From Trichosphaerium sp. ATCC 40318 (taxonomy: Eukaryota > Protista > Tubulinea): a stretch of DNA of 47,466 nt. Under the pieces are notes generated by a model. That model was not told where the DNA came from. It saw only the letters and a list, made by a program, of their open reading frames with translations, and made no database searches. Position numbers and translations under genes: made by a program. Positions 16,947-44,475 of this stretch are shown piece by piece; position 1 is the first letter of the stretch, and each line of letters begins with the position of its first letter. The stretch covers positions 1-47,466 of the forward strand of contig JALMLS010000136.1 in assembly GCA_038496445.1 (NCBI GenBank), in the 5' to 3' direction.

Positions 16947-17506
16947 TAAATTGTGAACGATGGTAGATTGTGTCACGTGTTTAAAAAGTAATATTACTTC
17001 AATTGACCCAAACGGCAATGGTTCTCTTTATGTTTTTGACCTTCGAAATTCTCTAGCTTGGATACATTGTTAAACAGGTATCTAGATCTCATCACGAACA
17101 CAACAAGCTAAATAGCAAGATAGTTGGGCAGTGAGTCACTCCTCTCTACATGGTCTTCTCGTTGTATATACAACATATTCGCTGTATAAGAACAAGGACA
17201 TGGGCCTTAACTCACTGACGTAAGTACTTCTACTGAAGTTGTTCAGAGAATAAGCTTAGTATTTTTCACAGCTTTTACAACATGTCTAAAAGGCGTTCTG
17301 CAGGCTTCGAGCCGTCTAAAATGTTATCAACATCGCTAATAAATACACATGAAGGCACTTGTAGTAGAATCAGACCCGTTAAACAAAGAATGAACTCAAA
17401 TGGAAACGAAATGGGTATCAATCTCCCCCAACATACACTAGAGTGCGTCCCTGCAAATATTAACAATATAAACGGTTCGGGGTTAACGAATACATCAAAG
17501 ACTTAG

Positions 17507-17660: not shown

Positions 17661-17894
17661 ATGGTAACGTTTGTTTATTTGATAGCTTTATTGCAAACTT
17701 ACATTGTCGAAGGTCTTTCAGCCTCGGTGGCAATGGTTATAGTTCAACCCAACCGTTATTGTGTAAACAAATTCCATGCTAATTGTTTTTCAATAAATAA
17801 AATTCAGTCTACAAAGAGTTGCGAAAACAATATCTGCAACCTCATGTAAAATTTACATGGTGAAGTAATGTAAAGTCTGATACTACATTTTATT

Positions 17895-18180
17895 ACAAAT
17901 CACGTGATAAAAAAACACACACGCGTGCGATTTACAACTACATCCACAATAGGCGAGTGTATGTGAAAATACTGTATCATGGTCTGTGTAAGGTACAGTT
18001 CGAAACGGTTTACAAACGTTCGAAAAAAGAAAAAAATGTTCGAAAAAATTGTTCGAAAAATCAAAAAGTTCGAAAAAACAATATAAAACACTGCAACCGA
18101 CACTCGCAATACGTGAACTCAAAATTACGTACCAATTTCCTAAAACAAACGTTGCAGAGCTATCACGTGATAAAAAAGCC
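17895..18180 (+). promoter_or_regulatory. Putative promoter cassette of ANK-PARP copy 1: ATCACGTGATA - 5x GTTCGAA - ATCACGTGATA
   Basis: CACGTG at 17901 and 18164; GTTCGAA at 17998, 18018, 18038, 18051 and 18068; the arrangement is conserved in the paralogue. Confidence 0.5.
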
Positions 18181-18673
18181 AAAAGGCACGTAAAAAGCTC
18201 TCGTATACGTTGTCATGTTGAGCGCTAACGGAACATTAACAAACGCGTGAAAAACCACTTTCGATCAAGGAAATGTATTTGACTACCTCCGTCATATCTT
18301 TTTTCTTTGTCGGACTTATCAAGTTTGAGTTGGATGAGTCGGGAGGTAGTTAGATTAACGCCTTTTTAATTATTTTTTTTAGCAAAGTGAGGAAAACGGA
18401 AAACCAAGAAGTATAACATCTGCGGTTGCATATCATGTTACACCGAGACTTAAAAGGTATTGTTGTTACCAAGTCCTTAAATATAATAATATTACCTAGC
18501 CGAACTGAAGAAACTTGGATCAGCACTGCGCAAGCTTAATTTTTTTTTTTATTAAGTCAGTTTATTGACACGACGGTACATTCCGCACATGTTTACACAT
18601 GAAGTACAGCAAAAACTAAGGGTTACGATCCCTTCGCCGTTAAACGATTAAATAGGTGGACCACACCTGCTAG

Positions 18674-21600
18674 CTAGAGCAAAGGCATGTATAAGTAGGA
18701 TTTGTCTTTTGGGTTTTTAAGTCTATTTTCTACCAGAGCCATTTCTTTTTCAATCAGTGATCGGTGTTTAGTGAAAGAGGGGAGCCCTTCTGAGTGTCGG
18801 GCTGCATTATAAGCTATCCAAGTCCGTTTTATAAGGATTGCCAGGTAAAGTTGGTTAATTGGGCTAAGAGAAGATAGGGAATGCAAGGTGTCAGAACAGA
18901 ATTGAAAGTTAAGTCTAAGTTTTTTAGCAATGATGGTAGTAACATAGTAAGGAGGAGATTTGAAGAGGATCCACATAATATGGTCTTGTTCAGCGTCATA
19001 GGCGCATCGAAGTGTGCGTAGGATTGCTCTAAGTAGGTAATCTCTGAGTATAGGGAATATTTTGAAGTGGTTGCCCGTGTGTAGAACTTTGAAGGTGTTT
19101 TCCAGTTTGAGGCCATACTTGATTAGCATCTCTTTGATACGAGCAGTTGGTTCGCCTTTATTAGCAGTAGAAAGTTTATAAAGTTGTTTGGCGCTTCTCG
19201 GTTTAGGGCCTACAGCATCTATAACTTCATCTAAAGAGCAGTTTATGAATTTGGTGTTGAGGGATATCCAGGCGTTTCTACAAATTGTGAAATGGTAAGA
19301 GGCATTGGCTTTAGACCACATGCCAAAGTGATTATGCCATTGATTCCATAAGCGGTAAAATGGTAGGTGGTTGGAGTGGTAGTTGTACAGAAAATTTTCC
19401 CAGTGAGAAGCCAGCAAAGCTGTGTTAAAAGTAGCAGGGTTGATCAAATCAAAGCCACCTTGAGATGTGCTATTGAAGATTCGCTTAGGTGAGCGTCGAA
19501 ATTGTTTGCCAAAAAAAAGGTAAGTAGTAGCAAGCTTGATAGAGTTAATTTGCTGGGGAGAAGCCTTGATAAGTCTAAACAGATATGTGAAGAGGGAGAT
19601 GGAGTAAGAAACGTATATAGTTTTTTTGGAGTAGAGTGTTCTTGTGAGATTGGCCCACCTTGTGGATTTGTTTTGTAGATTATTAACAACATTCCAAATT
19701 GTATTTTCTAAACCGATATTGTTTTTGTTATAAGTGAAGGTGGTACCAAGATAAGTGGCTGAGCTAGTAGACTTGTAAGGAGACAAAAGCGGTTTGTTGG
19801 TTATGGACATGCACTTGTCAGGATGGGCTATAAGACCTGTAGTGGATTGAGCTGCTTTAAAGACTTTGGTCATTTCAGTAATATCTTTGACAGAAGTGGC
19901 AAGAACAACAACGTCATCGGCAAAAGCAAGATAAGTAACCTTAGTTTTGTGTAACATGACACCATCCAACTTGCGGTTAAGCAGGTTGAGGAGTGGTTGA
20001 AGAGTGATAACAAATAGGGTAGGTGAAAGAGGGTCTCCTTGTTTGACTCCACGGGATACCAGAAACGGCTTAGACAGGGTGCGATTAACATAGACTTTGA
20101 AAAAAGTGTTAGAAAGGCAAGCTTTGATAAGGTTAAGAAAGGGCTTAGGCACTTTGAAGTGTTTGAGTGTGCGAAAGATGGCTTTATGATCAACTGAGTC
20201 AAATGCTTTTTGAAAATCAATAAAGGAGAAGTTGTAAATGTTGTTACCATCACCACAATCAATTTCTTGGAAGAAAGCCTCCTCCAAAGTAATGATATTT
20301 GTGGTAATGTCCCGTCCAGGTACAAATCCGCTCTGTGTTTTAGGAATGATGTGTTTGAGGATACAGCGTAACCTGTTGTTGATCAAGTGAGTGAGAATTT
20401 TATAGTCAGTATTGAGAAGAGCAATAGGGCGGCGATTACGAGGATCCAGAACATCACCTTTGTTTTTGTAAAGAGAGATAAATATTCCTTTTTTGAATGC
20501 TGCCGGAATGGAGACTGAGGAAGGGTTGCTAGTGTATGTGTTGTTAATACACCTGAGGAGGGAAGAAGAGAGTTTTGGAAACATTTTGTAGACAAAGGAT
20601 GGTAATGTATCTGGACCTGGAGCAGAAGAACCATTGAGCTTTGTGAGGACCTTATTCATTTCATCTTTGGTAAATGGTGAACTCATGTTTTTGAGTGCAG
20701 ATTTGGGGACTTTGCGAAGCAGTGGTTTAAGAGAAGAGCTTTTAAGTATAAGGCCATGTTTGGTAGCATTAGTTTTAGATTTTTTGTAAAGGTTTTCATA
20801 GAACGTACGCAGCACTTCAAGGATGTCTTTTGTAGAGTGAACTATCTCATTTTTAGAATTTTTCATAGCAGTAACGATTTGATTGTGACGTTTGCTGGCT
20901 AATCTAGCTGAAAGTAACGGACCAGGCACTTCATCAACAGTAAAGTCTTGAAGCCCTGCCTTGAACATTTGAACAGATTTGTAGCCTCGCTCCCAGTAAG
21001 ACAGCTTGGCACATAAATGAATATGTTCAGCAGTACCTGGTGAAGTGTTACTAAGTTGCTGTTTAACTTGATAGCGATTATGATTAATGATTTTGACCAG
21101 ATCTAATTGGTTTTTTTTAAGAGAGTGAGTAAGAGTACGCTTTATGCTACACCATTGGTGAAGGTTATTTGCTAAATGTGTGTTGGTGGATTGGACAGTG
21201 GTTTTTAAAGTTTCAGAGTATTTCATCCAGTTTTGGAGCCGCCATAAGCCTTTGCTAAGTTTGTTTTTGTGAGAAGAGAACTTGGAAACAAGGAAGCAGT
21301 GGTCATAGTTTGATAGTGGAGGATCAACTTCGAATTTAGTGCAGGATTGATGCCAAAATTTACTAGCAAAAATATAATCGATTTTAGACTGAGAAGACTT
21401 ACCACGGTAACAGGTAGAGAGAAGGTTATTGTCAATATCAGTTAGACTGTTAGAGAGAAGAATTGTACCTAGTTCAAACAAGCCCGTAAGCCTAGAATCT
21501 GAACTGCTACAGTGTGGGGTGACATGTTTGACTGAAAAAATTGTATTGAAATCACCTAATAGAAAATCGACGTTGCTAACGTTTTGATTAAGAGAGGAAA

Positions 21601-21997
21601 AAAAAGCAGGGCGTTCTTTAGACTGAGAGGGAGCGTATACAACACAGATGTTGAAGGAAACAGCATTTTTGGTGACTGTGGCTGTGACATACCTGCCGGA
21701 TTGGGAGAGCACAATATTTGAGATGTTGAGTGACTTGCGGAGTATCAGTGCTGTACCTGAATGCCTTGAGGAAGGTTGAGGAGACCAAGCGACCTTGTAA
21801 GTAGAAGAGGAGACAAAAAAGGGTATAGAGTTGGTTCTACGTGAGTTAGAGGAGTTTGAAATAGGTTTCCAATGTGTTTCAGAGACAGCGACAAGGTCAA
21901 GATTGTGAAAAGACATTTTTTGAAGCAAGAAGTTCCATTTATTGACAGTAGTAAGTCCGTTAGCGTTCCAAGAGCCTATAGCTAAGTTGAGAGTCAT
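18674..21997 (-). CDS. LINE ORF2: apurinic-like endonuclease + reverse transcriptase (1107 aa)
   Basis: EN motifs SWNANGL, VSETH, VYAP, GDFN, IDYIF, YDH. RT motifs SAPGPD, RPIALLNTDYKI, QSGFVPGR, IDFQKAFDSVDH, GVKQGDPLSPTLF, FADD, YLG. Confidence 0.97.
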   Translation of the reverse strand: MTLNLAIGSWNANGLTTVNKWNFLLQKMSFHNLDLVAVSETHWKPISNSSNSRRTNSIPFFVSSSTYKVAWSPQPSSRHSGTALILRKSLNISNIVLSQSGRYVTATVTKNAVSFNICVVYAPSQSKERPAFFSSLNQNVSNVDFLLGDFNTIFSVKHVTPHCSSSDSRLTGLFELGTILLSNSLTDIDNNLLSTCYRGKSSQSKIDYIFASKFWHQSCTKFEVDPPLSNYDHCFLVSKFSSHKNKLSKGLWRLQNWMKYSETLKTTVQSTNTHLANNLHQWCSIKRTLTHSLKKNQLDLVKIINHNRYQVKQQLSNTSPGTAEHIHLCAKLSYWERGYKSVQMFKAGLQDFTVDEVPGPLLSARLASKRHNQIVTAMKNSKNEIVHSTKDILEVLRTFYENLYKKSKTNATKHGLILKSSSLKPLLRKVPKSALKNMSSPFTKDEMNKVLTKLNGSSAPGPDTLPSFVYKMFPKLSSSLLRCINNTYTSNPSSVSIPAAFKKGIFISLYKNKGDVLDPRNRRPIALLNTDYKILTHLINNRLRCILKHIIPKTQSGFVPGRDITTNIITLEEAFFQEIDCGDGNNIYNFSFIDFQKAFDSVDHKAIFRTLKHFKVPKPFLNLIKACLSNTFFKVYVNRTLSKPFLVSRGVKQGDPLSPTLFVITLQPLLNLLNRKLDGVMLHKTKVTYLAFADDVVVLATSVKDITEMTKVFKAAQSTTGLIAHPDKCMSITNKPLLSPYKSTSSATYLGTTFTYNKNNIGLENTIWNVVNNLQNKSTRWANLTRTLYSKKTIYVSYSISLFTYLFRLIKASPQQINSIKLATTYLFFGKQFRRSPKRIFNSTSQGGFDLINPATFNTALLASHWENFLYNYHSNHLPFYRLWNQWHNHFGMWSKANASYHFTICRNAWISLNTKFINCSLDEVIDAVGPKPRSAKQLYKLSTANKGEPTARIKEMLIKYGLKLENTFKVLHTGNHFKIFPILRDYLLRAILRTLRCAYDAEQDHIMWILFKSPPYYVTTIIAKKLRLNFQFCSDTLHSLSSLSPINQLYLAILIKRTWIAYNAARHSEGLPSFTKHRSLIEKEMALVENRLKNPKDKSYLYMPLL

Positions 21998-22827
21998 AGG
22001 TTGGAGTCGCTAGAGGGTAGTTTAACAATTTTGCTGGGTGAGTCAATGAGAAAAGGCTCGTAAGGGTCTACTGTATCTACATGAGTTACTTTACGACGTT
22101 TGGCGGGAGGAGAGGAAGTACTTGCGTTATTATCAGTGCCGTCAGAATATTCTGCTTTGCGAGAGGTTTTTTCGAAAAAGGTGATGGTAATGGAGTCATT
22201 ACCCGAAGGTATAACAACTCTACCAGGGCCAGTGAGTTTAGGACATACAGCAAGGAGATCGACATAAATGGTTTCACCAGGGATATTGCGGATGGATACA
22301 CGGTGAATAGAGCCAACATGTGCGTGGTACGACATTTCTAAGAACTTTTGGAAAAGTTGGGGGGTAATGTTAACCGGGATACCATGGAATACAATAGTTT
22401 GCGCTGGAGGAGCTTTGGCGGAGGAAGTGTAAGCGATACCATCATGAAAACATCTGAAAATTTGGGATGGGTATGAGATACGGATATTAGCAAACGACTT
22501 TAAAATCCACCCTTCTGAGGTGTTTTTAATGGTCGTGAGCCCTTGGTCGATGGAGTTGAGAAATTCATCAGGATCTTGAAATAATGGCGTGATAGCGGTA
22601 CGTAGGAACGTAGGAAAGTCAGGAGCTAAGTTTTTGTTGACTCTAACAGCTGTAAAGGTGAGATTTGGGTCATTGAGGTTATCCGCCGTAACAGCGGTTC
22701 CATTAGGCAAGTTAGGGGTACCAAGAGCAATAATAGTGACGATAATGGTGGTTTGGGCAGTATTAGCTAGCAGGGCGGACCAACCTTGTAGTACTGTTTC
22801 ATTCGGATTAGTCTGTGGAGCCGCCAT
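21994..22827 (-). CDS. LINE ORF1 (277 aa; RRM-like segment, NLS PPAKRRKV)
   Basis: Lies upstream of ORF2 and overlaps it by ATGA; TIVFHGIPVNIT.. resembles the first strand of an ORF1 RRM. Confidence 0.85.
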   Translation of the reverse strand: MAAPQTNPNETVLQGWSALLANTAQTTIIVTIIALGTPNLPNGTAVTADNLNDPNLTFTAVRVNKNLAPDFPTFLRTAITPLFQDPDEFLNSIDQGLTTIKNTSEGWILKSFANIRISYPSQIFRCFHDGIAYTSSAKAPPAQTIVFHGIPVNITPQLFQKFLEMSYHAHVGSIHRVSIRNIPGETIYVDLLAVCPKLTGPGRVVIPSGNDSITITFFEKTSRKAEYSDGTDNNASTSSPPAKRRKVTHVDTVDPYEPFLIDSPSKIVKLPSSDSNL

Positions 22828-23141
22828 GGCAGAGACGTTGCGATGATAGAGTAGTTAAGGAAGGACCCCTGCGCAAGCTTAATCCTAATACTTCTATCTT
22901 GAGCAAATATTTTGATTTGAGACAGCTTAAGGATGTAGAGAAAATAACAACAGGTACAGTGTATACAGTAGTATGTCCATTTATGTTATCTGTAGTATAC
23001 AAACTACAGAATCTATATAACGGAGAGACAGCCAATAAACTTCTACTTGTTTCAGGTTTGTTTATTAGCATTAGTACATGTTAACCATCAATTTAGCTTA
23101 TGTTGATTTGCCAAATATTAAATCGATGTGCTTACATGTAG

Positions 23142-25159
23142 GAGCAAATGCCAATGCTAAAGATAAATATGGACAAACAGCTTTACACAAAGCAGGTATT
23201 ATGATGTTCTTAATACAATGTATGCTCTAACACTTTCCAGCATTTTGTGGACGCCTCGAGGCTGTTATATTATTGCTCAAGGCAAATGCAGAAATAAGAG
23301 CTACAGACAAAGACGGCGAGACACCTTTACAAGTTGCTGGTACTGTTGTACATATAATGTATGTTCTATCTAACATGCTCCAGCTTTTTGTGGACACAAA
23401 GATATTGTCAATTTATTGATTGATAAAGATGCAAATGTCAATGCTACAGATAAGTATGGACAAACAGCTTTACACAAAGCAGGTACGGGATGAAAACATA
23501 AAATGTATGGTCTAACACATTCCAGCATGCCGTGGACACAATGATATTGTTGACTTATTGCTCAAGGCAGGTGCAAATGTAAATGGTACAGACAACGACG
23601 GAGAAACAGCCTTGTACAAAGCAGGTACTTAATGCGTTGTAAATAGAGTGCATGTTCTCACACTTCGCAGCATGCCGTGTACACTACGATACTGTCAAAT
23701 TATTGATCGATGCAGATGCAAATGTCAATGCTACAGATGCACAAACAGCTTTAGACGTTGCTGGTACTGTGATGTTAAAAAATGATGTTCTAACACCTTC
23801 CAGCATGCCGTGGAGACCATGATACCGTTAAGTTATTGATCAATGCACAAGTGAATATCAATGTTACAAACAAAGAAGGACACACAGCTTTATACCAATC
23901 AGGCACACGCACTGTAACAGTATATGTTCTAATACTTTACAGCGTTTTATGGGCACAATTACAGTGTTAAATTATTGATCAAAGCGAAAGCAGATATCAA
24001 TGCTACAGATATAGATGAAGAAACAGCTTTACATGCTGCAGGTAGTAAATTGTAAATATACAATTTTTTACACTTTCCAGCATGCTGTGGACACGTTGAT
24101 ACTGCAAACTTATTGATTGCATCAAAAGCAAATATCGATGCTACCAATATACATGGACAAACTCCTTTACACAAAGCAGGTACTGTTGTAAAATATACAA
24201 TGTATGTTCTCACATTTTCCAGTATGCCAAGGACAACGATATTGTCAGATTATTGATCACAGCAAAAGCAAATATGAATGTTAAAGATAAAGATGGAGAG
24301 ACAGCTTTACACAAAGCAGGCATGTGATGTAAATATACAACATATGTTCTAACACTTTCCAGTATGCCGTGGACACTATGATACTGTTAAATTATTGATC
24401 TATGCAGATACAAATATTAATGCCACAAATAAGCATGGACAGCTTTGTACCAATCGGGTAATCTGTGTTGTAACAATGAACATACTACAACTTTCCAGCA
24501 TTTTGTGGGTACAAACGTATTATTACATTATTGATAGGAGCGAATGCAAATGTCAATGCTGTGGACAAAGGTGGACAAACAGCTCTACATGCTGCAGGTA
24601 GTAAATTGTAAAGTATGCAATGCTAACACGTTTCAGCATATAATGGACACGATGCTACTGCAAACTTACTGATCAATGCAAATGCAAATATCAATGCTAT
24701 TAATAAACGTGAACAAACAGCTTTACATTTAACAGGTACCTGATGTAAATATACAAAGCAGTTTATAACACTTTCCAGCATACTGTGGACACTACATTGT
24801 CGTTAAATTATTGATAAATGCGGATGCAAATGTCAATGCTAAAGATATAAATGGACAAACAGCTTTACACAAAGCAGGTACTGTGATATAAATATAAAAT
24901 GTTCTCACATGTTCCAGCATGCCGTGGACACAACAGTTCTGTTAAATTATTGCTCAAGGCAGATGCAAATGTCAATATTGCAGATAAAGATGGACAAACA
25001 GCTTTACATGTTTCTGGTATAAACATCAGTTGGAGTTACAAAATATCTTATACTTGTTAGTTGACTGTGATGACAGTAGAGTAGCGGAGCAGTTAATTAA
25101 ACATGGCGCAAATGTTGAAGCACTAGACAATAAAGGATGGACACCTTTATTTTATGCAG
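23142..25159 (+). repeat. Tandem ~140-bp exon+intron units, one ankyrin repeat per exon (14 full units plus a half unit)
   Basis: Exons 23241-23339, 23384-23482, 23526-23624, 23671-23763, 23804-23902, 23943-24041, 24081-24179, 24223-24319, 24363-24457, 24499-24597, 24637-24735, 24779-24877, 24918-25016 and 25061-25159, separated by homologous 39-46-nt introns. Confidence 0.92.
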
Positions 25160-27899
25160 GTTCTACTACATTACCAACACAAAGACTCTAACTATTAGTA
25201 GCACAATATAAATATTCTAAAGTGTTTCTCATCTTATCAAAAGCAAGTGATGTTTTTTCTCGGACCATGAGAGGACAGAAGTTTGATTTTAAATTTGTAT
25301 TGAAAAAGGTGGTTGATAATGATCCTGCGTACACCAAAGTGTTTGAAACTCTTTTGACACACTTTCCAACCAATGGGCACACTCGTTCACTATGGGTTTC
25401 ATGTGCACATATAAAGAGTGAGGAATATGTAAGGCTAGGTATTATATTTGCTGATGAATGGAGATGCAAGCTTGCAAAATGGTTGCAATACTTGGTACAG
25501 CTTTAATTCAAAAAGTGTTGACTGATCATACACCAAGCCAACACGCTCTTATTTTAAGCTTGCAATGCAAAAAGGTATTTGCGCTCTAATCTGTACTTAC
25601 AATCGCATATTTGTACAATCCTCGGTACCAACACATTTTGCATTCAAACAGTTTTAATTTCCTTGTTAGAGCTTTTGGGTTGAGCAAGGAGGACTAATGG
25701 AAGGTATTTTGTATGATTTACCAGATGATATGTGGAGTAAAAAAACAAGCCAAGTTCGGACCATTTATCAAATGTGTGAAGAAGAAGGCTGGTGTATAAA
25801 CTCCATTCAACCAGATTTTAAACATTGTATGTGACGATAGTATAAAATTGCTGCTAACTGTTGCATAGCATTTAGGGAGTTTTATACATGCAACTATTGT
25901 GCTCAGCACCAATATACAGGAAATGTTGTATGTCAATATATAACATTTTTGTTTAACCTGTGGGTAGAAGCTTATTGCTGATCACCTCAAATGTAAGCGT
26001 GGTAAATATGCTATTCAGCCTATCACCCCAAATAGAGTATTATGTGATACTACAGCTGGTACAATCAATTGTCTCTGACAACCATTTAAGTTTCACAACA
26101 GGACTAAAAAGTAAGACATCATGGAACTTAAATCCACGATTGGAGTATGCGTGCGGTTGGGATAGATCAAACAACAAGTGAGTTGTTCATCTTTTAACCT
26201 AACATTGTTTAATATTTTACAGAGGTTTTAATGAAAAAGCAACCCATTATAGAACATTGGACCTATTTGATGAGACTGACACTGTAGCCAAACGAGAACT
26301 AAAGTTTCTTCATGAACAGATGTCAAAAATGCATGGATATGATCAAGTCACTGTTAAATCAGCATATCTTGTTTGCAATGATGTCTTGCTTCAGAACTTT
26401 GGGATGTACAACACAATACTTAAACATAGGCACCAGTACGTACACAGTATACATGCACATGTTTTAGGAAATATTGATTGTTACCTAGAGAACTACCAAA
26501 TTTATTTTGTAAGAATGATTGGAGGCGTGATGCCAATCAACGTACAAGTGTTTTTGATAAGTTTTTATCTTTGATACCCAGATCAACCAATAGCACAAAG
26601 GTACTACTATAGTAACAATAATAACTTGTGACTAATTGTTCAGTTACCTGTTGTGTTAATGGCACATGGAACACGTGCTGAAGCAGCATATAGTATTGTA
26701 AAAGCTGGATTTGGAACTGTAAGTGCATTGGATGCTGGATATTATGGACAAGGAATCTATTTTACAGTACTACTTAATCATCACTTTGTTCTTGTTCTAA
26801 TATGTTATTATAGAGTAGTCTTACATATGCTTGTTCTTATGATAGCACTAAAGGCGAAAAAACACTGATTTTGAGTTTAGTTACACCTGGCAATGTGTAT
26901 CCTGTACACACACATGGGTTCTATGTTTATTTACAATATTGGTAGGTAATTGAAAAACCTAGTGATGTTATCAACTTTAAGGGTAAGCCTATTAAACCTG
27001 GGTACCAAAGTCATTATGCAGTGGTAAACAAGAAGGGAGAAGCTTTAAGCGACAATATTGATAAATGCAAATGTGACGAGTTGGTTGTGGCTCAAGGTAA
27101 ATAGTATCATGTGATGTCAGTGTATTGTTTTTACTGTTAATTTAGATGTACAAGCTGTGGCGCGATATATCATTACTGTTGTAAAGAAGCCAAGAAAACG
27201 GGTGACTCAAAAAAAAAGTAAGGCTACAAAAAAGAAATCAAACAAGCCAACGAAGACCAAGAGCATCAAACCAGTTGGAAGTGATAACATAGAAAACAAA
27301 GAGATTTTGAAATCAGAAGATGATAGCGAGTCAGATGAGTTGTCTGATGAAGATTCATTTATCACTAAACGGTAAGGCAATAACACTAAAATATCTTACT
27401 TATTTACTGTGAAGAAAATTATGGGCAGCTGCAAATCCAAATCAACCTGATCAACCATGCACACAAGACCAGCGTGTAATATCACTAAAAAAAGAAGTCA
27501 CAAGGCTCAAACAAGAAAATAAAACCGTCCTTGACTGCAATGCCAAGCTGGAGGAAGACAAGGCACTATTGGAAGAAGAAAATGCCAAACTACTTGCCCA
27601 AATTGCAAGTCTCAAGAGCAATGTGAGCTCATAACTGTTTTCTACATAATAAAAATTCAATTAGCTTCTATGTTGTTTAATAAGCGTTTATGTTTAGAAT
27701 TTCTTCAGCACTTAGGCTGCGCTATGATTAAACATGCAGTATTAATAACTATTAAGCGTTTATGTGTAGAATTAAGGCACATGGTTTTTGATTAACTACG
27801 CAATCTTTTGTTTGTATCAAATATTCAATGTTGAAGTATTCCTTGAACAGTAACTAGATCAATTGTAAATTAGTTTCTTCATGCTGTCTAGTAAGAGTG

Positions 27900-28790
27900 T
27901 CATTGTTTTGGAACAAAGATAACTGCCAAATCCTCGTTCTCTCCATAGTACATTATACCAAATAACACATATATTTCAATGTCAGCAGATATCCATTTAG
28001 ATGCTAGTTCTGGGTATTTGCTTAGAGCTTTCATAGTATCATTAAAACACTCTCCAATACAACTTAAACATTCTTCATTTTCTTCATAATGATCACGTAC
28101 ATCATCAATTCGAAATAAGTTAGCTGCACTATAGTAGTACCCAGAACCTCCCCCACAAATAGGCAGAGCTACCAGCGGACATCTCAAATAGTAACATTTA
28201 GGACAGTATACTCTGAGGTCCGGTTTGTACACGCACATACAATCCTTTGTGGGCTTTCTACAAACATCACATGTTTTGGGGCGAGAATCTACAAATTCAA
28301 ACTCGTGGTTTGGTTCAGGCAAAGAATAGTCGATATCGCTAAGGTTGTCAAGGTCTTCTAATGCAGTTTCGTAATGTTCATGTTTTGCCCAACGGATAAC
28401 GTGAGATACAGCCAAGTCCCACAATGACTCTTTCGGTCCTTCATCATTTAAAACTGAAAAAAATAAAACATCTTCTTGTAACACGTGCGTTATTATCCTT
28501 TCTTTAAGTTCTTCTGTGTCTTCGTCGTGAATTACTTCAAGTACAGAGATATCCTTTAAAAGGCGTGTTTTACCACATGCCATACCAGAAATGATGTTGC
28601 GAAAGTGCTTGTTCGTTTATTTGAGCTGTACATGCCCTTTACACCTGTATAAAGCAGAATTTTGATTATCTCACCTAAAATGTCGGCAACAAGAAGAGCT
28701 TGTGGTGTTTGATGTTTTTTATCGCTTGTCGATTGTTTTTCTGCTCGTAGTTGTTTATTTAGACTCATACTTGTAAATGACATGCCAATC
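27900..28790 (-). CDS. Hypothetical protein with an F-box-like N-terminus and a Cys-rich (zinc-finger-like) segment, split over two overlapping frames
   Basis: ORF 28556-28840 has LLVADILGEIIKIL; ORF 27900-28583 has CDVC..CMC..YCPKC..C. The frames switch near 28560-28583. Confidence 0.5.
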
Positions 28791-28959
28791 GAAGTGATAT
28801 TGACAACTACACGTATGTAACGGTCAAATAAATTAATCACGTGATATAAACCAAACTCGCCTTTCTTACTCCAACAATAAGCACATATTTTAGTTTTGCT
28901 TTCTTAAGTCTTTGAGTGTAAAACAAAGCAATTGATAAGAGGTTGCAAAGAACACATTA

Positions 28960-29198
28960 ACGATACAAAGCTATTAGATAGCCCAACAGAGATACTTGCT
29001 CATTTACTTGAGTTTGTGGAGAGTTGTGAACGATTTTCGGTTTATGAAAGCTGTCATTCACCATCATGTTGGATACATTACTCGGTAATGTCATCATTTG
29101 GTTGTCATCTTCTTCCAGGCAAATACTTAAAAACAGAAAAAATTCTCGCTTATGAAGACGAGCTTAGCTTTATTCATGTCGGTAAGCCATTTGCCTAA
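28960..29198 (+). pseudogene. F-box gene fragment
   Basis: LLDSPTEILAHLLEFV..RFSVYESCH closely parallels LDLPTEILAHIL..RFAVAQTCH of the 13596 gene; no LRR follows. Confidence 0.5.
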
Positions 29199-29279
29199 TA
29201 CAGTCTTCCATTAGGTGTGCATGGTACTCTACAAGTCACACGTGGAATGTCAGACCAATTTCCTTTCCATTGCAAGGAG

Positions 29280-29960
29280 TTAGCGTTCGCAACAGTATCT
29301 CACTTTCATATCTGGACAAGTCTCAGAATTATCTCTACGCCTGCATTGTAACCCGCCTGCCAATGTACTTTGGGATCTTAAAAAATCTGTGTATGCTCTC
29401 CAATCTTTTCCTGAAGAAACAAGTACACATTGAACATTTGTAGCTTTGTGACCATCAGTACCTTTCAATATCAGTACAATGAGTTATGTCTAAACGTAAA
29501 AATAAGTCTTCGGAAGATCTACAAAAATTGTAAGTGCTCACTGATATTAGCACCGCCTACTGTCTCAGGTGCTTGAACTAAATGTTGAATGATATGAATT
29601 CTCTGAGATGTTCTGAATACTTCTCCATTGTTGTAGAGAGCAAATATATCACTTTGATCTCTTGAGTTATAAGGAATGAACTTACACAGTCTACCGTTGT
29701 TAATGCGTTTATGGTTATTTGGTGTCTCATACTCGCCATTCCCAGTAGGGTGTCTGCATGGATCCTGTTTTAAACCTTTAAAATACTGAAAGCGCAGTTC
29801 TAACCTTGTTGTGTACAACTATACACATTTGGTTTCTCGAACAAACATGATGTACAACAACGCTTTGATTATTGGTATTTTATGTTGCATTTCCGTTCAG
29901 CATCTTATACTCTCACAACGTATGATACTTGCAGGACCATATTCCTCCAATAACCTTTTT
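29280..29960 (-). CDS. Small protein or fragment with a mucin WxxW/CysD-like domain
   Basis: Spliced QDPCRHPTGNGEYETPNNHKRINNGRLC|TDGHKATNVQCVLVSSGKDW..GLQCRRRDNSETCPDMKVRYCCER* matches the CysD pattern (P.G.G.YE..C..C..GL.C..C.D..VR.CC). The 5' end is uncertain. Confidence 0.55.
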
Positions 29961-30600
29961 TTAGGTTATCCTACTTCTTTACGATGTCATGTGGCACATT
30001 ATTGGCATTGATAGATTCAAATTAAAACCTCTCACACTTTTTTGATGTAAACTTCCAATGTCAATGATCTCTTTTATGCTTTGTACTTCGAAATTCTAGC
30101 TTGGATACATTGTTAAACGTGTCTATCTCCTTGAGCATGAAACAAGCTAAATAGCAAGATAGTTGGGCAGTGAGTCACTCCTCTCTACATGGTCTTCTCG
30201 TTGTGTATGTCCTTGGGTAAGAGCAACTCCAAGTACCTTAGCTGACGGAAGTCATTCTGCTGGCTTAGAGCCGTCTAAAATAAAATGAGGCCGTTAAACA
30301 AAGAATGAGCTCAAATGGTAACAAAATGGGTATCAATCGTGTCCAACATATTGTCCGTATCGTGCGTTTGCACAACTCTGCAACTTTTGCTGTTTGTGAC
30401 TGTTGGTCTTTCAAGATCTGTTAAAAACTACAAGATCTGACGATCTTGTCAGTTCCGGAAAAAACTAAATCCACGTCTACACTGTATACGTATTTTTACG
30501 ACCACGTGTTTTTGACTATTGTACTTTATTTGGTACATTAGCTTTTGACAAGTTCTGTTGACGTCTCTGATAACCTCTAAGGTCCAACAGTTGTCTCATA

Positions 30601-31472
30601 TCCCGTGAAGGGACACACTTTTTCTGGTGAAGGGACACACACTTAATGACACCATATTTTCATGTATATTTACTTAAACATGCCATAAAGTTAGCCACAA
30701 ATATACCATCTATACTACTATATGTGTGAATATCAAGGGGTAATCAAAGTGGTTGGGTTGCAAGCTAGAGCGTTTTTTTGCAAAGTTAAAATTTTCGACG
30801 TGTCAACTTTGCATGCACACTGTGGACCATCTAAAAAATAACTCTTTCCCTTCACACTATATGTGATTTACAAGACCTTTATACCCGTCTATAAACATTA
30901 AAGAACTAAAAAAATTATTAATCATCTGTTTGCGAGGATGTTTCAAAATGGTAAAAAAGCCACTTTTGTGTTCATTTTTTCGGGCCTGCTTAACTGTGTA
31001 AAAGTGTAAATCCAATACCAGTTTCTTAACATGTGTTAGTACTATATGCTCTTGTTTAAATATTGAAATAACTGTAGGAGTAAGGGAGGAATTTGAGTGT
31101 CAAAATCACTTTTAGGCCTCTAAAATAATTGTAAAATGCTGCTGTGTATATTAATAGAACTCTTTGTTTAGTTTTTACATGTACAACTAAAACCTTTTAG
31201 CACGTATGGCAATAATAGATTTTGAAAAATATGAGTAAACTGCCTTTGAACTATAAAAGTAATTTTGTGTTAAAAAGTAAAAATTGGCTTTTTTGACAAT
31301 GCTCTGCCGCACCACCCAATCAATTGTATAAACTTTTGGTTTGTAAATAGATAGTATTGCATATTGGTGACAAAATGGTATGATATTATGCTGTTTAGCT
31401 TGAAGAGATGGAAAAATATAGGTAAAAAAAAATTGTGTACTTTCACCAAAAACAGTGTGTCCGCCCATGGGA
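30601..31472. mobile_element. Non-autonomous TIR DNA transposon (MITE), TA-flanked (Tc1/mariner-like)
   Basis: Left end TA|TCCCGTGAAGGGACACACTTTTTCTGGTGAA; right end, reverse-complemented, TCCCATGGGCGGACACACTGTTTTTGGTGAA followed by TA (25/31 identical). Non-coding AT-rich interior; absent from duplication copy 1. Confidence 0.75.
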
Positions 31473-31515
31473 TATAGTCTAAAACGGATTATTACGCTAA
31501 TACCGTACGCTCAGC

Positions 31516-31651
31516 ATACTTGGGAAGCGCTTGGAATTTTCTTTGAGATTTTTAACGTGCTCACGTTTTCTACGTTATACCGTACATGCAGCGCAAGATA
31601 CTTTGGAAGCGCTTGGAATTTTCTTTTGAGGTTTTTACGTTATCTCACGTT
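31516..31651 (+). repeat. Imperfect ~55-bp direct repeat (2 copies)
   Basis: atactt(g/t)ggaagcgcttggaattttcttt..gag..ttt.acgt..ctcacgtt at ~31516 and ~31598. Confidence 0.7.
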
Positions 31652-31841
31652 AAATACTCCTCTTTACGCCTGATTATGTGCCAGCATTCGCGTGGTGTTT
31701 GTAAGTTAACATGTAAAAAGCAATTGTTTTTCAATAAATAAAATTCAGTTGTCTACAAAGAGTTGCGAAAACAATATCTGTGCAACCTCATGTAAAAAAT
31801 TACGTGGTGAAGCAATGTAAAGTCTGATGCTACATTTTATT

Positions 31842-32140
31842 ACAAATCACGTGATAAAAAACACACACGTGCGTTTTACAACTACATCCACAATAGGCGA
31901 GTGTATCTGAAAATACTGTATTCATGGTCTGTGTAAGGTACACATACAGTTCGAAGCGGTTTACAAACGTTTGAAAACTTGTTCGAAAAAACCAAAACTT
32001 GTTCGAAAAAAACCAAGACTCGTTCGAAAAAAGATGACCTTTAAAAAAACACTGTAACTACCGACGCAGTACGTCATCTCAAAATTACGTACCAATTTGC
32101 TAAAACAAACGTTGTAGAGCGATCACGTGATAAAAAAGCC
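31842..32140 (+). promoter_or_regulatory. Putative promoter cassette of ANK-PARP copy 2
   Basis: ATCACGTGATA with CACGTG at 31848 and 32124, flanking GTTCGAA at 31949, 31981, 32001 and 32022 (variant GTTTGAA at 31969). Confidence 0.5.
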
Positions 32141-32498
32141 AAAAAGGCACGTAAAAAGCTGTCGTATACGTTGTCATGTTGAGCGCTAACGGAACATGAA
32201 CAAATGCGCTTGAAAAAAACCACAACATCATTTTCGATCAAAGAAATGTATTTAGCCTACCTCCGTCATATAGCGGAGGACCCAGACTCATACAACTTAA
32301 ACTGCCCATCTAAAACTTTGGCAGCGAGCACCACACAACAAATAACAATATTTTTACGCATTGTCTTTTCTTTTTCTTCTTGACTAGACTTAATCTCCAA
32401 ACTCCTTGTGGCATCTAGGAACAGATTAAATGTACTTCCAACAGTAGTTTGCTGTGTGAAGCATGTTGCCAATGTTTCAAGAAGCAAGTTTAAGTTGT

Positions 32499-35400
32499 AT
32501 GAGTCGGGAGGTAGTTAGATTAACGCCTTTTTAATTCTCTTTTTTAGCAAAGTGAGGAAAACAGAAAACCAAGAAGTATAGCATCCGTGGTTACATATTA
32601 TGTTACGCAAGGCCAAGAGAATATTAGAGACTTAAAAGGTATCGCTATTAATAATATTACCTAGCCAAACTGAAGAAACTTGGATCAATACTGCGCAATG
32701 TGGGATCAAATGTCAATGCTACAGATAAATATGGACAAACAGCTTTACACAAAGCAGGTATTATGTTTTAATATCTTGTATGTTTTAACACTTTACAGTG
32801 TTTAATGGACGCCTTGAGGCTGTTAAAGTATTGCTCAATGCAAATGCAAATATCAATGCTAAAGACAAAGATAGCGAAACAGCTTTACATGTAGCTGGTA
32901 CTATTGAAATACAATGACTTCTAACTCTTTCAGCATGGTGTGGACGCAACAATGTTGTAATGTTATTGATCGATGCAGATGCAAATGTTAGTGCTACAGA
33001 TAAATATGGACAAACAGCTTTACACAAAGCAGGTATCATGTTGTAAATACAGTTTATGTTCTAACACCTTCCAGCATCCTGTGGATATATTGATACTGTT
33101 AAATTATTGATCGATGCAGATGCAAATGTTAGTGCTACAGATAAATATGGACAAACAGCTTTACACAAAGCAGGTATTGTTTTGTTAAATATACAATGTA
33201 TGTTCTCACACTTCTCAGCTTTTCATGGACACTATGACACTGTTAAATTATTGCTCATGGCAAATGCACATATTGATGCTGTAGATGAAAATAGAGAGAC
33301 AGCTTTACACAAAGCAGGTATTGTTTTGTTAAATATACAATGTATGTTCACATGTTCCAGCGTTTTGTGGACACAACATTACTGTTATAATATTGATCAA
33401 TGCAGATGCGAATATCAATGCTCAGGATAAATATGGACAAACAGCTTTATGCAAAGCAGGTATTGTAGAAAATATACAATGTATGTTCTAATACTTTACA
33501 GCATTCCGTGGACACAATGACATTGTTAAATTATTACTCAATGCTACAGATGAAAACAGAGAGACAGCTTTACACAAAGCAGGTATTGTAGAAAATATAC
33601 AATGTATGTCCTAATACTTTACAGCATTATGCGGATGCAACGATATTGTTAAATTATTGATAGATGCAGACGCAAATGTCAATGCTAAAGATATAGATAG
33701 CCAAACAGCTTTACACAAAGCAGGTGTTGTTATAAAATATGCAATGTATGTTCTCACACGTTACAGCTTTTCATGGACACTATGACACTGTTAAATTATT
33801 GCTCATGGCAGATGCATATATTGATGCTGTAGATGTAAATAGAGAAACAGCTTTACACAAAGCAGGTACTGTAGAATATACAATGTATGTTCTCATGCGT
33901 TCCAGTATGCTGTGGAAACAATGATACTGTTAAATTATTGATCAAAGCAGATGCAAATATCAATGTTAAAGATAAAGATGGGCTTACAGCGTTACACAAA
34001 GCTGGTCATAATGATCAATTGAAATTACTAATTATCTTACACCTGCTAGGAAAATGTGGAGTGAGCTCTATAGCTAGACAATTAATATTATCAGGCGCAA
34101 ATGTTGAAGCAATAGACAATAAAGGATGGACACCTTTATTTTATGCAGGTTTACTACATCATCAAACCAAACATTTTAACTAGTAATAGCACACTATAAA
34201 AATTCTGAAGTGTTTCTCATCTTGTCTAACGCAAGTGATGTTTTTTCACAGACTATGAAAGGAGAGAAGTTTGGATTTAAATCTATATTGAAAAAGGTAG
34301 TTGATAATGATCCTGCATACACCAAACTATTTGAAACTATCTTGGCACACTTTCCAACAAATCAACAACAGCTGTGGCTATCGTGGGCAAATATAAAAAG
34401 GCGTGGATGGAGATACAAGCTTGCGAAATGGTTGCAGTACTTGGTACAGATTCATGTTTGAAATGTTGCACTTACAAATAATACACCAAGCAACTTAGCA
34501 TTTACTAATCATACACGTAGCCAACACGTCCTTATTTTAATCTTGCAATACAAAAGGGGGTTTGTATTTTAGTCTGTACTTACAACCGCATATTTGTACA
34601 ATCCCCGGTATCAACATTTTTAAGTTTAGTTTGCTTATTCATCGATTAGAGCTTTTGGGTTGAGCAAGGAGGACTAATGGAAGGCATATTGTTTGATTTA
34701 CCAGATGGTATGTGGAGTAAAAAAACATACCACACTGGTAGTATTGCTGAAATGTGTGCAAAAGAAGGCTGGTGTATAAACTCTATTCGGCCAGATAAAC
34801 TAGAGTGTAAGTGTTAATAGTCAATATTGTTGTTTAGTGTTGTGTAGGGTTTTCACAGCATTATACATGCAGCTATTGTGCTGAGGACAGAAAACATACT
34901 GCATGTCAAAATGTATAATCTTTTTTAACTAGTGGGTAGCAACTCATCAATGATGTACACCTCAAATGTAAGCATGGTACATATGCTATTCATCCTATCA
35001 TACCAAATACACTATTAACTGACACTACTGTTGGTACAATCGATACCATTTTTACCAACTGTTGATTTTTAAACAAGGATTAACAAGTGAGACATCATGG
35101 AAATTAAACCCTCGATTGGAGTATGCACATGGATGGGATAGATCTAAAAACAAGTTGAGGTTTAATGTATTTAATTTTGTTAAACAGTTCTAGGGGGTTA
35201 ATTAAAAAAGCAACGCATCACAGAACATTGGACCTTTTTGATGAGAATGACACTGTAGCCAAACGAGAACTAAAGTTTCTTCATGAACAAATGTCTAAAA
35301 TGCACGGATATGAGCAAGTCACTGTTAAATCAGCTCATCTTGTTTGCAATGATGTCTTGCTTCAAAACTTTGGGATGTACAACACAATACTTAAACATAG

Positions 35401-36700
35401 GCATCAGTATGTAGAGTACGTGTTTAAAGATTATTGATTGTTACCTAGAGAACTACCAAAGTTATTTTGTAAGAATGATTGGAAGTGTGATGCCAATCAA
35501 CGGACAAGTGTTTGTGATAAGTTTTTATCTTTGATACCCAGATCAACCAACAGCACAGAGGTACACTGTAGTAACAATAATAACTTGTGACTAATTTTTC
35601 AGTTACCTGTTGTGTTAATGGCACATGGAACACGTGCTGAAGCAGCGCATAGCATTGTAAAAGCAGGATTTGGAACTGTAAGTGCATTGGATGCTGGATA
35701 TTATGGACAAGGAATCTATTTTACAGTACTATTTAATCATCACTTTGCATTTGTTCTAATATGTTATTGTAGAGTAGTCTTGAATATGCTTGCTTTTATG
35801 ATAGCACTCGTGGTGAAAAAACATTGATTTTGAGTTTAGTTACACCTGGCAATGTGTATCCTGTACGCACACATGGGTTGTATTTTTATTTACAATATTG
35901 GTAGGTAATTGAAAAACCTAGTGATGATTTTAACTTTCAGGGTAAGCCTATTAAACCTGGGTACCAAAGTCATTATGCAGTGGTAAACAAAAAGGGAGAA
36001 GCTGTAAGCGACAATATTGATAAATGCAAATGGGACGAGTTGGTTGTGGCCCAAGGTAAATAGTCTCATGTGATGACAGGTAAGTGTATTGTTTTTACTG
36101 TTAATTTAGATGTACAAGCTGTGGCACGATATGTCATTACTGTTGTAAAGAAGCCAAGAAAACGGGTGACTCAAAAAAAAAGTAAGGCTACAAAGAAGAA
36201 ATCAAACAAACCAAAGAAGACCGAGAGCATCAAACCAGTTGGAAGTGATAGCATAGAAAACAAAGAGATTTTGAAATCAGAAGATGATAGTGAGTCAGAT
36301 GAGTTGTCTGATGAAGATTCATTTATCGCTAAACGGTAAGGCAATAACAATAAAATATTTTACTTATTTACTACTAAGAAAATTATGGGCAGCTGCAAAG
36401 CTGGATCAGCCTGATGAACTATGTGTACAAGATCAGCGTGTAATATCACTAAAACAAGAAGTCACAAAGCTCAAACAAGAAAACAAAACCATCATTGAGG
36501 AATCAAATACCAAAACACAAGAGCATCTTACCAGAATAACTAAACTGGAGGAATGCAATGTCAAACTGGAGGGCGACAATGCCAAACTAAAAGAAGACAA
36601 GGCCAAACTAGAAGAAAACAATGCCAAACTGGAAGAAGAAAATACCAACCAATGCTCTCAAATTGCCAAACTACTTGCCCAAATTGCAAGTCTTGAGTAA
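32499..36700 (+). CDS. Ankyrin-repeat / PARP-like (H-Y-E) ADP-ribosyltransferase / coiled-coil protein, copy 2 (apparently intact)
   Basis: MSRE|QSEENRK..RDLK|AKLKKLGSILRNVGSNVNATDKYGQTALHKA| then 10 ankyrin exons, a Cys/Trp-rich linker, and the PARP domain VKSAHLVCNDVLLQNF..LMAHGT..GFG..GYYGQGIYFT|SSLEYA..LSLVTPG..DELVV. This is followed by a Lys-rich/acidic stretch and a KLEExNA heptad coiled coil. Confidence 0.88.
32799..34148 (+). repeat. Tandem exon+intron ankyrin units (10 units)
   Basis: Exons 32799-32897, 32934-33032, 33075-33173, 33219-33317, 33361-33459, 33502-33582 (81 nt, in frame), 33625-33723, 33767-33865, 33906-34004 and 34050-34148; introns 36-45 nt. Confidence 0.92.
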
Positions 36701-37089: not shown

Positions 37090-37800
37090 TTAAGCAGCTC
37101 ACACTTTCAAAAAAAGTCTTCAGAGCACATATGTGTCTACAATTATTAATTAATTTGAACTAGACTTGGCGTACTTCAATTAACTATTTCATTGAGTCTA
37201 AAACTGAGTTTTCTGCCTGGGATCATATTCTTCTTCTCCATGTTTTGCAGTTAATTCTTTTAACATAGTAATTAAAGATTACATTCTGTCATTTCTGGCA
37301 TTTTTTATAACTTTCAGTTTTCCACATAAACGTCTCTAGGTAGGTTTTTTCTGTCTTTTCTTTCTTTCATTTCTTCCTAGGGAATTTTGTAAGCAGTTCA
37401 CACTTTCAAAAAAAGTTTAGCACACCTCAAAAATGTTATTTATGTCCAATTTTTTGCTATGCTTCAGAACACATATGTGTCTATAATTTATATTAACCAG
37501 AACTTGCTGGTAATTAATAGTGTGCTTCAATCAACTATTTCATTGAAGCTAAAACTGAGTTTTTTTCTGCTTGGGGTCATATTCTTCTCCTCTATCACCA
37601 CCATGTTTCACAGGTAATTCTTTTACAGCATAGTGAGTAAGGAATACATTCTTTCGTTTAAGACATTTTTTATCACTTTCAGTGTACCACATAAAGCTAT
37701 CGTCACCTGTTTCTATACCTGATTGATGTAAATTGGTCATTCTTTTGAACTATCATTCTAACCCACAGATACCTTTTTCAAATCTTTCCTTTTGCTGGCA
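37090..37800 (-). pseudogene. Two tandem, degenerate copies of a gene 3' end plus 3' UTR
   Basis: KELTAKHGEEEYDPRQKTQF* (~37198-37260) vs KELPVKHGGDRGEEYDPKQKKTQF* (37549-37625); the downstream sequence aagcag.tcacactttcaaaaaaagt is also duplicated. Confidence 0.5.
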
Positions 37801-38975
37801 GTTGCTCAATAAATCATTGTGTACATATGTGCAGTTATAGCGTATTTGATAATTTAGGTATCAAAACACATGTTTCTTTTTCAAAGAAGTTGATGAACAT
37901 AATATTTAAATGAAAATGTTAAAAAACTCACTCTTGCTCGGGTACGTTATTGCATCAGATAGCCATAAAGCTTGCTGTATATGTATTTTACCACTATAGG
38001 ATTTTTAGACACAGATCTTAGTTTTTACATGGAGATACTGCAAGATTTTCCAAAACCAGGTTCAAAGAAACTGTGTCACTACACTCCATCAACTATTGCT
38101 ATAAATTACACTGTGCAATACCACATATGTTGACTATCACTATGAAAAGTGTGGGATGGTCAATTAGCTCTTGAGGTATTTAAATCCAAAAATCGCTAAT
38201 GGTCCACTAGTACAGAATATTGGAATTTATCAATTACACAAGGCTCGACAAGCTTAAAACTAATGTAAATACATTAAAAATAGTGTTAGACAACACTTCA
38301 GTAATTTAAACGCTTGTCAAAGCTTGTGTAATTGCTAATTTTGGGAACTCGCTTTTTCTTTATTCTTTACACCACAAACTAACGTTTTCAGCGTTTCTAG
38401 CGCAATAAACGTCGTTTAAAGGTACTTTGTATACACTTGTTCATATTTTGGTACCATAATCCTTGTTTTAGACTATAACGCTCTATTGCTGTTCAAGCAC
38501 CGTTTATAACTGATACTGGCTTGATTAATGTGTTTGTGAGCAGTGAAGCTCAGTTGACGCTTTTTTAGTTAAGTCTTAAAAAAAAACGCCAAAAAACAAG
38601 TAAAAAAGTAAATAATTTATTCCACATTTAGAACGTAACAATAGAGCCATTCATTCCAAAGGTACATTCACACAGGATAAAGCATTGATATGAGAGGTGT
38701 GAACCGCTTACAAAAATCGTCCCTATAACACCAATTCCGTATTTGCTCCAAAACACTCGTCCTAATTTGGACAAACAAAAAACCTTAAAATCTTACCTTC
38801 AAACGCGAGTCACAACTCCTCTCTTTTGATACTTTTAATAAGGTACAAACACTTTTACATTGCACTTAGTTCCTGTGCGCTAAGGCAATTAGTAAACCCA
38901 TTTTTTATCCTTGACTTCTTTTTTAGGCTTAACTGGTACACTCAAGTCGTTTTTAACTTTTTCCTCACATCAAAC

Positions 38976-40387
38976 ATGCAATACTCTGGCGCAGAGTATT
39001 ATTTATCGGGGCTCACTGCACTACCAATAGAAACAATAGTTCATATCTTGAAATGCGGGACCTTTACTTTACGTTCAGCACAAACATGCCATCTTATGCA
39101 TGATATCGTACATAACCACGTTGGATACAAAGAAATATGTGTCTCAAACGAAAATCAATTGCCGATACTTTCTGGGAGCCCGTTACTTCAGAACACACGC
39201 ATATCACTCGCTGGTATTTGTAGTACTGCCAACGATAGCCATTTGGACTTACTTGCAGGAGTACACACTATAGACTTGAGCGGCTGTTTAGGAGTAACGC
39301 ACAAAGGCATCAGTGCATTGATAGGTGTCCACGAGATTGATTTATCTCGAACAAATGTGAGAGACTCAAGTTTAAAGGCATTATCTGGCGTACATACTAT
39401 CAACTTGAGTCGTTGTAATCAAATAACGAGTGAAGGTATCAAATCATTGGCAGGTGTGCACACTCTTTACTTGACAAGTTGCGAATGCCCTTTAATAGAC
39501 GAAGGCATCAAAGCACTGTCAGGTGTACACACTATCGACTTGTGGTGTACTAAAATAACAGATGAAGGCTTAAAACCTTTGGCTGGTGTGCAAGCAATAT
39601 ACTTGTCCAGATGTTACTCGATTACAGATGAGGGTGTACAAGCATTGGCTGGCGTACAAGAAATTGATCTGTCACACACAAAAGTGACAGACGCAGGGCT
39701 AAAGGCGCTGGCAGGAGTTCAAAATGCTGGTTTGGTGGATTGCAAAAACATTTCTGATGAAGGTATCAAAGCCTTAGCTGGCGTACACCAAATCAACCTC
39801 AGCGGATGTGTAAACGTACATGACGAAGGTATCAAAGCTTTATCTGGTGTACACACAATCAGTTTGGAGCATTGTAGACAAATAACAGACGAGGGTATCA
39901 TGGCGTTAGCCGGTGTACATGAAATTAATTTATCTTACACCAACATACGCAATGAAGGCCTCAAAGCATTGTCAGGTGTACACACAATCTACTTGAGCAA
40001 GTGTGGAGACATATCAGACCTCGGTATAATGGCATTGGGTGGTGTACATACGATCAATTTATCGTTCACATCTGTGAGCGATTATGGCATTAAAGCGTTG
40101 TCTGGTGTACACAATATCACCTTGACATGTTGCAGTAGAATAACAGATGAAGGCATCAAGGCGTTGGCTGGCGTACATGACATCAGAGTCGCGTTCACAA
40201 AGGTGAGCGATTCAGGTATTAAAGCGTTGTCAAGTGTACACACGATCGATGTACAAGGTTGTTCTGGAGTAACAGATGAAGGTATTAAAGCTTTGTGTGT
40301 TTACGTCATATTCATCACAATATGAATACTGGTCTCAGTGAAGAATACATAAAGATCCTACGCAAGCGCGGTGTACGTGTATCTTAA
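38976..40387 (+). CDS. F-box + 16 short LRRs, intronless; probable 1-nt frameshift near the C-terminus
   Basis: MQYSG..LTALPIETIVHIL..AQTCH F-box; GVHTIxLxxCxxITDEGIKAL repeats. The ORF stops at 40325, but a further LRR-like cap continues in another frame to 40387. Confidence 0.9.
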
Positions 40388-44450: not shown

Positions 44451-44475
44451 ATATCTATTATTATGCGGATAATTT

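Follow-up and report, generated by a model that had tools for sequence, protein, structure and literature searches.

A tandem ankyrin–PARP gene pair with one repeat per exon in Trichosphaerium, probably part of a lineage-expanded family under birth-and-death turnover

We analysed a 47,466-nt stretch of DNA from the amoeba Trichosphaerium sp. ATCC 40318 (contig JALMLS010000136.1 of assembly GCA_038496445.1; hereafter, the window), which is intron-rich eukaryotic DNA with a GC content of ~37% (37.69% for the published genome; PMC10521059). The window contains two tandem paralogues (copy 1, 18334–27634; copy 2, 32499–36700) in which an ankyrin array, divided into one repeat per exon, precedes a PARP-type domain. 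A first-pass annotation of the same DNA had placed such a system at 23142–34148; the array was located correctly, but the limits of the genes were not and the start of copy 1 was missed. The copies are 79% identical overall, with substitutions skewed to synonymous sites. We consider it fairly probable that these genes belong to a lineage-expanded 'bind and tag' ankyrin–PARP family that undergoes birth-and-death turnover, with a putative role in conflict.

Copy 2 is intact and, if run X1 is RNA as we guess, expressed. Its predicted protein comprises a short N-terminus, the ankyrin array, a middle region, the PARP-type domain, a basic/acidic linker and a coiled coil; an alternative exon-2 donor at 32576, of a kind that fits both copies, would give 1020 aa. 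Contigs of run X1 match copy 2 with 0–1 mismatches and are spliced over three introns (35863–35904, 36056–36109 and 36336–36378), and further contigs of this run derive from transcribed paralogues. Around 32665–32757, copy 2 lacks ~290 nt found in copy 1 downstream of exon 3, so that its exon 3 continues in frame into the latter half of the N-cap repeat. A long interspersed nuclear element (LINE) and two frameshifted repeat exons disrupt copy 1. Everything past repeat 9 is still open, so this damage is probably recent. The LINE itself (18540–22868) is probably young: both of its open reading frames (ORFs) are intact, with the stop of ORF1 overlapping the start of ORF2, an endonuclease-like N-terminus, a reverse transcriptase domain and a perfect 14-bp target duplication.

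The arrays are built from exon cassettes much as the first-pass annotation had described. Tandem Repeats Finder detected arrays with a period of ~142 at 23136–25008 and 32707–34006, and all array exons after the first donor have phase-1 boundaries (14 in copy 1 and 10 in copy 2), the paralogues being unlike in repeat number and content. The array introns (36–46 nt) carry the common motif that had been noted; we base their relatedness on this directly visible motif and did not use pairwise intron identities, which are inflated by the aligner (69% for control introns). Three of the generalizations drawn from this layout were too broad. A length of 99 nt applies to 18 of the 22 internal ankyrin exons but not to the other four (copy 1: 93, 97 and 95 nt; copy 2: 81 nt), two array donors of copy 1 are GC rather than GT, and the 97- and 95-nt exons of copy 1 shift the frame, which makes them exceptions to the idea that every exon could be left out or exchanged without a change of frame. 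A DNA pattern made from one ankyrin exon gave a single match in metagenome contigs, a chance match to an unrelated ankyrin gene, and this pattern scan recovered no array transcript.

The repeats have been reshuffled over evolutionary time, as proposed, with a non-collinear order and block duplications. Mean exon identity is 71% within copy 1, 76% within copy 2 and 73% between the copies, and clear counterparts in the other copy exist only for the first and the last repeat. Internal repeats do not group by gene (approximately unbiased test, p = 0.01–0.03), and their order is no more collinear between the copies than in shuffled arrays (p = 0.11). Repeat pairs 5/9, 6/10 and 7/11 in copy 1 and 4/8 in copy 2 (96% identical) point to block duplications with a period of four. 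Repeats 2 and 3 of copy 2 share an identical tract of 74 nt and have different 5' parts, a GENECONV-like test was marginal (best global p = 0.04 and 0.065), and array deletions of 4, 6 and 18 nt are flanked by short direct repeats.

A second organism indicates how old the layout is. An orthologous gene on a long-read metagenome contig (L011; GC content, 45%) has matching intron positions in its PARP domain, and its six ankyrin repeats occupy one phase-1 exon each with the same junction, separated by introns of 41–212 nt that are not alike. Because L011 shares the layout with unrelated introns, the one-repeat-per-exon arrangement is inherited, and the similar introns of the window are only traces of more recent duplications of an exon together with its intron. 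Since the inherited intron interrupts every repeat at one and the same phase-1 site, exon plus intron forms the unit of duplication. The transcript of another paralogue carries seven consecutive repeats and is spliced. In the metagenome that yielded L011, a second PARP gene of the branch (contig L012, 7492–8605) shares the intron positions; an ankyrin array upstream of it was not detected.

The two halves of the genes seem to have had different histories. Identity between copy 1 and copy 2 steps from ~80% to ~94% at ~26250, where the PARP domain starts, in introns and exons alike, and intron mismatch falls from 30% to 10% across the step (p = 1.6e-8). We therefore infer that conversion or a swap reached the catalytic half when the sensor halves had already diverged, so that its exchange is more recent than that of the sensor half. 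Between the copies (25061–27420 versus 34050–36384), CpG transitions are ~4 times as frequent as those at other C/G sites, which suggests CpG methylation in this genome.

Downstream of the array, both copies contain the predicted PARP-like exon (Pfam PARP, E = 7e-5, one 41-aa exon; Pfam searches of both copies were run exon by exon rather than on the joined protein). The HGT, GIYF and DELVV motifs of the H-Y-E triad are kept in both copies, in a register taken from a profile alignment with PARP13. With a profile built from 41 relatives, PARP13, PARP10, PARP4 and PARP2 were matched, and no tankyrase was among the profile matches. For the structure, a close relative, P0152, stands in for the window protein (61–83% identical over the catalytic exons); its model (predicted local distance difference test score, 90.6) is matched by Foldseek to the catalytic domains of tankyrase, PARP10 and PARP12 (E ~2e-8), tankyrase being the top match, at ~15% identity in the structural alignments (13–17%). 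Fold and triad together support the earlier view that the array is fused to an apparently active PARP-type domain, which belongs to a distinct PARP branch. The nearest relatives come from MMETSP/JGI sources. In other protist proteins, PARP domains of this branch follow LRR, EGF, FG-GAP, Roc-COR, DUF4116 and ANK-SH3 domains, and one is part of a simple ankyrin–PARP protein. We found no match to a SAM domain in the scanned middle exons of copy 2 at E values up to 5 (two short exons were left out and sensitivity is limited), and no match to WGR or PARP-regulatory domains exon by exon or in the transcript-derived relatives P0004 and P0005. Descent of the PARP domain from giant viruses is not supported, as viral contigs gave only five weak matches (34–39% over 50–70 aa).

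Selection on individual repeat positions bears on the proposal of DARPin-like hypervariability. At the DARPin sites, which we take to be positions 2, 3, 5, 13, 14 and 33 of the engineered libraries, entropy is indeed raised (1.91 versus an average of 1.14 bits; permutation p = 0.011), and the residue pairs listed earlier for the post-splice and beta-turn sites were confirmed. However, the outer-surface positions 17, 18, 21, 25 and 27 are equally variable, with position 25 above all others, and the proportion of non-synonymous differences stays below that of synonymous differences (pN < pS) at DARPin and back-face positions alike. Codon models (our own, GY94-type, on a fixed exon tree and with recombination not modelled) gave ratios of non-synonymous to synonymous rates (dN/dS) of 1.08 (six DARPin sites), 0.75 (turn sites), 1.17 (outer surface) and 0.36 (core), and no significant positive selection (M2a versus M1a, p = 0.29). 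Positions 13 and 14, directly after the splice site, reach a dN/dS of 2.2 (p = 0.005; a-priori bootstrap p = 0.0004; p = 0.07 if the pair was chosen post hoc). A model with CpG mutability fits better and lowers this value to 1.6 (p = 0.10), codon 14 shifting among CpG-related codons; the excess is thus largely explained by CpG mutability. Position 13 alone has a dN/dS of 2.4 under the CpG model (p = 0.04, uncorrected), and the first base of its codon is always T (F, C, Y, W, S and L), unlike in a random library. The array repeats are on average 51–59% identical at the amino acid level, with the best three-repeat block at 76% in copy 2 and 65% in copy 1. The evidence for diversifying selection at the locus is weak, and the two arrays are not strong cases of binding-face diversification. 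A combinatorial, library-like binder, as first envisaged, is not borne out at this locus, given the variation beyond the binding face, the site-model result and the low repeat identity.

In the reading that we favour, the ankyrin array would bind a target and the H-Y-E PARP-type domain would ADP-ribosylate that target or itself, with the coiled-coil tail probably oligomerizing the protein. Unequal crossing-over, short-homology deletions and gene conversion are the putative agents of the turnover seen in the arrays, and would add, drop and mix repeats while keeping the frame. Core residues are under purifying selection, and surface residues of both the binding and the back face change at an approximately neutral rate; any positive selection on the two post-splice residues is mild at most. 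Birth and death would account for a live copy 2 next to a copy 1 disrupted by a LINE insertion and by frameshifts. Exchange between paralogues probably affected the catalytic half at a later date than the sensor half. The likeliest reason for such a family would be a conflict with viruses or intracellular bacteria. Several points weigh against this interpretation: activity and binding are deduced from domain content, the 22 short repeats with recombination give the selection tests low power, the excess at positions 13 and 14 before CpG correction hints at stronger diversifying selection, run X1 is RNA only by guess and its contigs do not cover the ankyrin exons of either copy. Amoebae are natural hosts of giant viruses and Legionella-like bacteria, and their cell-autonomous immunity is poorly known; a large family in which a rearranging ankyrin arm is linked directly to a PARP from a branch not yet described offers a concrete candidate for a part in it. 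At this locus, a dead copy lies beside a live one, the catalytic half appears to have been exchanged later, and the same exon layout recurs in a second organism.

A rival account is that an ordinary tankyrase-like enzyme, with a signalling or scaffold function, gained its repeats neutrally; the generic pattern of young repeats (conserved core, relaxed surface) and CpG mutability would then make conflict unnecessary. All exposed sites lie near a dN/dS of 1, the fourfold CpG effect is in line with it, one copy is decaying, relaxed selection on paralogous repeats has been reported as universal (PMC5120217) and ankyrin–PARP fusions arose several times in eukaryotes (PMC4245714). We nevertheless regard it as unlikely, if still plausible, given that it does not account for the size and fast turnover of the family, for a catalytic half that was exchanged later, for the joining of this PARP branch to many repeat domains of receptor type or for the value at position 13 under the CpG model.

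We also think it rather improbable that Trichosphaerium-like amoebae hold a large ankyrin–PARP sensor–effector repertoire whose repeat exons are recombined or alternatively spliced fast enough to provide a variable library of innate receptors that ADP-ribosylate viral or bacterial proteins, with exchange of catalytic halves as part of the process. More doubtful again is a dedicated diversifying immune receptor–effector, in which combinatorial splicing or somatic shuffling would act on positively selected DARPin-type sites and the PARP domain would mark pathogen proteins. Symmetric phase-1 exons would permit shuffling, the arrays are non-collinear, the a-priori test at positions 13 and 14 is in its favour and heavy giant-virus traffic has been reported for the host (PMC10521059). 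However, site models detect no significant positive selection, the beta-turn sites fall below a dN/dS of 1 and the back face is as variable as the binding sites, the signal at positions 13 and 14 fades with the CpG effect or a post hoc choice of the pair, codon 13 is always T-initial, spare or reversed exons of the Ectocarpus type were not noticed and L011 has the same layout with unrelated introns. Nothing at the locus shows a system of programmed, antibody-like diversification. An artefact of long-read assembly from the amplified DNA used for the genome (PMC10521059), which would have created the second copy or the breaks in copy 1, is very improbable: the window does include an inverted repeat typical of amplification chimeras and the loss of 2 nt in a CA run could be a consensus error, but the copies are only 79% identical with substitutions skewed to synonymous sites, the LINE has intact ORFs, a poly(A) and a perfect target duplication, short direct repeats flank the deletions of 4, 6 and 18 nt, and independent spliced contigs match copy 2 almost exactly.

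Our fast-turnover ankyrin–PARP family may work like a tankyrase-style bind-and-tag enzyme with a rearranging arm, without being a tankyrase. Tankyrases (PARP5a/b) and the Clade 1-ank PARPs (Dictyostelium Adprt3 and Caenorhabditis elegans PME-5; PMC4245714, PMC2964712) likewise combine an N-terminal ankyrin array with a C-terminal H-Y-E PARP domain. Tankyrases differ in the low identity of their catalytic domain and in the SAM domain, and Clade 1-ank PARPs in the WGR and PARP-regulatory domains, none of which was found here exon by exon; the genes described here have, unlike both, a coiled-coil tail, a separate protist PARP branch, a multi-copy family and a variable repeat number. One-repeat exon shuffling is known in brown algae (PMC3341825), where the LRR-ROCO and NB-ARC-TPR genes (PMC3341825, PMC11378527) also have one repeat per symmetric exon, paralogues that vary in repeat number and order, tandem copies and pseudogenes. 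In contrast to those genes, which couple LRR or TPR repeats to ROC-COR or NB-ARC, the window couples ankyrin repeats to a PARP effector, with no spare or reverse-strand exons noticed in the 36–46-nt introns and no significant positive selection in site models. Variable ankyrin arrays are known in fungal NLRs with ANK, TPR or WD repeats (PMC4986451), which resemble our genes in their ankyrin arrays, variable concave-face residues, variation in repeat number and recombination between repeats; the identity of at least 85% over at least 100 aa used for those genes is not reached here (best three-repeat block, 76%), NACHT and NB-ARC domains are absent, variation extends beyond the concave face and introns split the repeats. 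DARPin libraries vary at six positions that are among the variable ones here, but they have a fixed scaffold, whereas positions 16–19, 21, 25 and 27 also vary in our arrays and position 13 takes few residue types. In line with the novelty suspected in the first-pass annotation, our literature searches turned up no description of one-repeat-per-exon ankyrin–PARP genes, and we found no paper on this combination or on this PARP branch.

Table 1. Positions of the features of the two ankyrin–PARP copies in the window
Feature	Position	Strand	Remarks
Upstream block	17781–18297	.	84% identical to 31722–32271
Copy 1 start codon, exons 1–2 and 5' piece of exon 3	18334–18539	+	Orthologous to 32499–32700
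Target-site duplication, left, 14 bp	18526–18539	.	
Full-length LINE retrotransposon, antisense in copy 1 exon 3	18540–22868	-	4.3 kb
LINE poly(A)	18540–18552		
LINE ORF2	18674–21997		1107 aa, RVT_1
LINE ORF1	21994–22827		277 aa
Target-site duplication, right, 14 bp	22869–22882	.	
Copy 1 exon 3 remainder, 60-nt exon and N-cap ankyrin exon (99 nt, 23097–23195)	22883–23195	+	Largely lost from copy 2 by in-frame deletion
Copy 1 ankyrin array, 14 phase-1 exons (13 internal, 1 terminal)	23241–25159	+	Introns 39–46 nt; GC donors 23903, 24320
Copy 1 repeat exons 8 (97 nt) and 9 (95 nt), frameshifting deletions	24223–24457	+	
Copy 1 middle region (C-cap, helical part, Cys/His-rich segment)	25202–26177	+	~80% identical to copy 2
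Copy 1 PARP-type domain exons and basic/acidic linker	26223–27371	+	H 26665, Y 26758, E 27078 intact; ~94% identical to copy 2
Copy 1 last exon, coiled-coil tail, stop	27415–27634	+	
Upstream block of copy 2	31722–32271	.	Counterpart of copy 1 block
Copy 2 gene model, 26 exons, open frame throughout	32499–36700	+	1041 aa
Copy 2 ankyrin array, 10 phase-1 exons (nine 99 nt, one 81 nt)	32799–34148	+	Introns 36–45 nt
Copy 2 middle region (C-cap, helical part, Cys/His-rich segment)	34190–35153	+	No Pfam family exon by exon
Copy 2 PARP-type ADP-ribosyltransferase exons and linker	35194–36335	+	H 35624–35626, Y 35717–35719, E 36037–36039
Copy 2 last exon: heptad coiled-coil tail (21-nt repeat), stop	36379–36700	+	

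The Cys/His-rich segment between the ankyrin array and the PARP domain (25670–26058 and 34650–35033) is not present in the paralogues P0004 and P0005 and includes the most diverged exon pair (68% identity, pN > pS, 17–19 codons). A UBR-type zinc finger was considered as a candidate for this segment and could not be confirmed; an Atlas search with the C-cap exon gave no match. The upstream blocks (17781–18297 and 31722–32271) are the probable promoter region, duplicated along with the gene, and contain repeated GTTCGAAAAAA and TCACGTGATAAAAAA motifs; CACGTG motifs occur upstream of the L011 orthologue too.

Between the copies lies a Cys-rich ORF on the reverse strand (27900–28583, 227 aa) with no Pfam match, and 3' of copy 2 is a local duplication of 230 nt (37118–37330 and 37462–37695; 76% identical). 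The inverted repeat at 40970–47466 (3 kb, 99.4% identical, spacer of 490 nt) doubles an endonuclease/phosphatase gene and a kinase-like gene, and looks like a hairpin chimera from amplified DNA. Three (F-box-)LRR genes (13596–14507, 16068–17018 and 38826–40325) are apparently intronless in an otherwise intron-rich genome, have internal periods of 63, 66 and 129 nt and are possibly virus-related.

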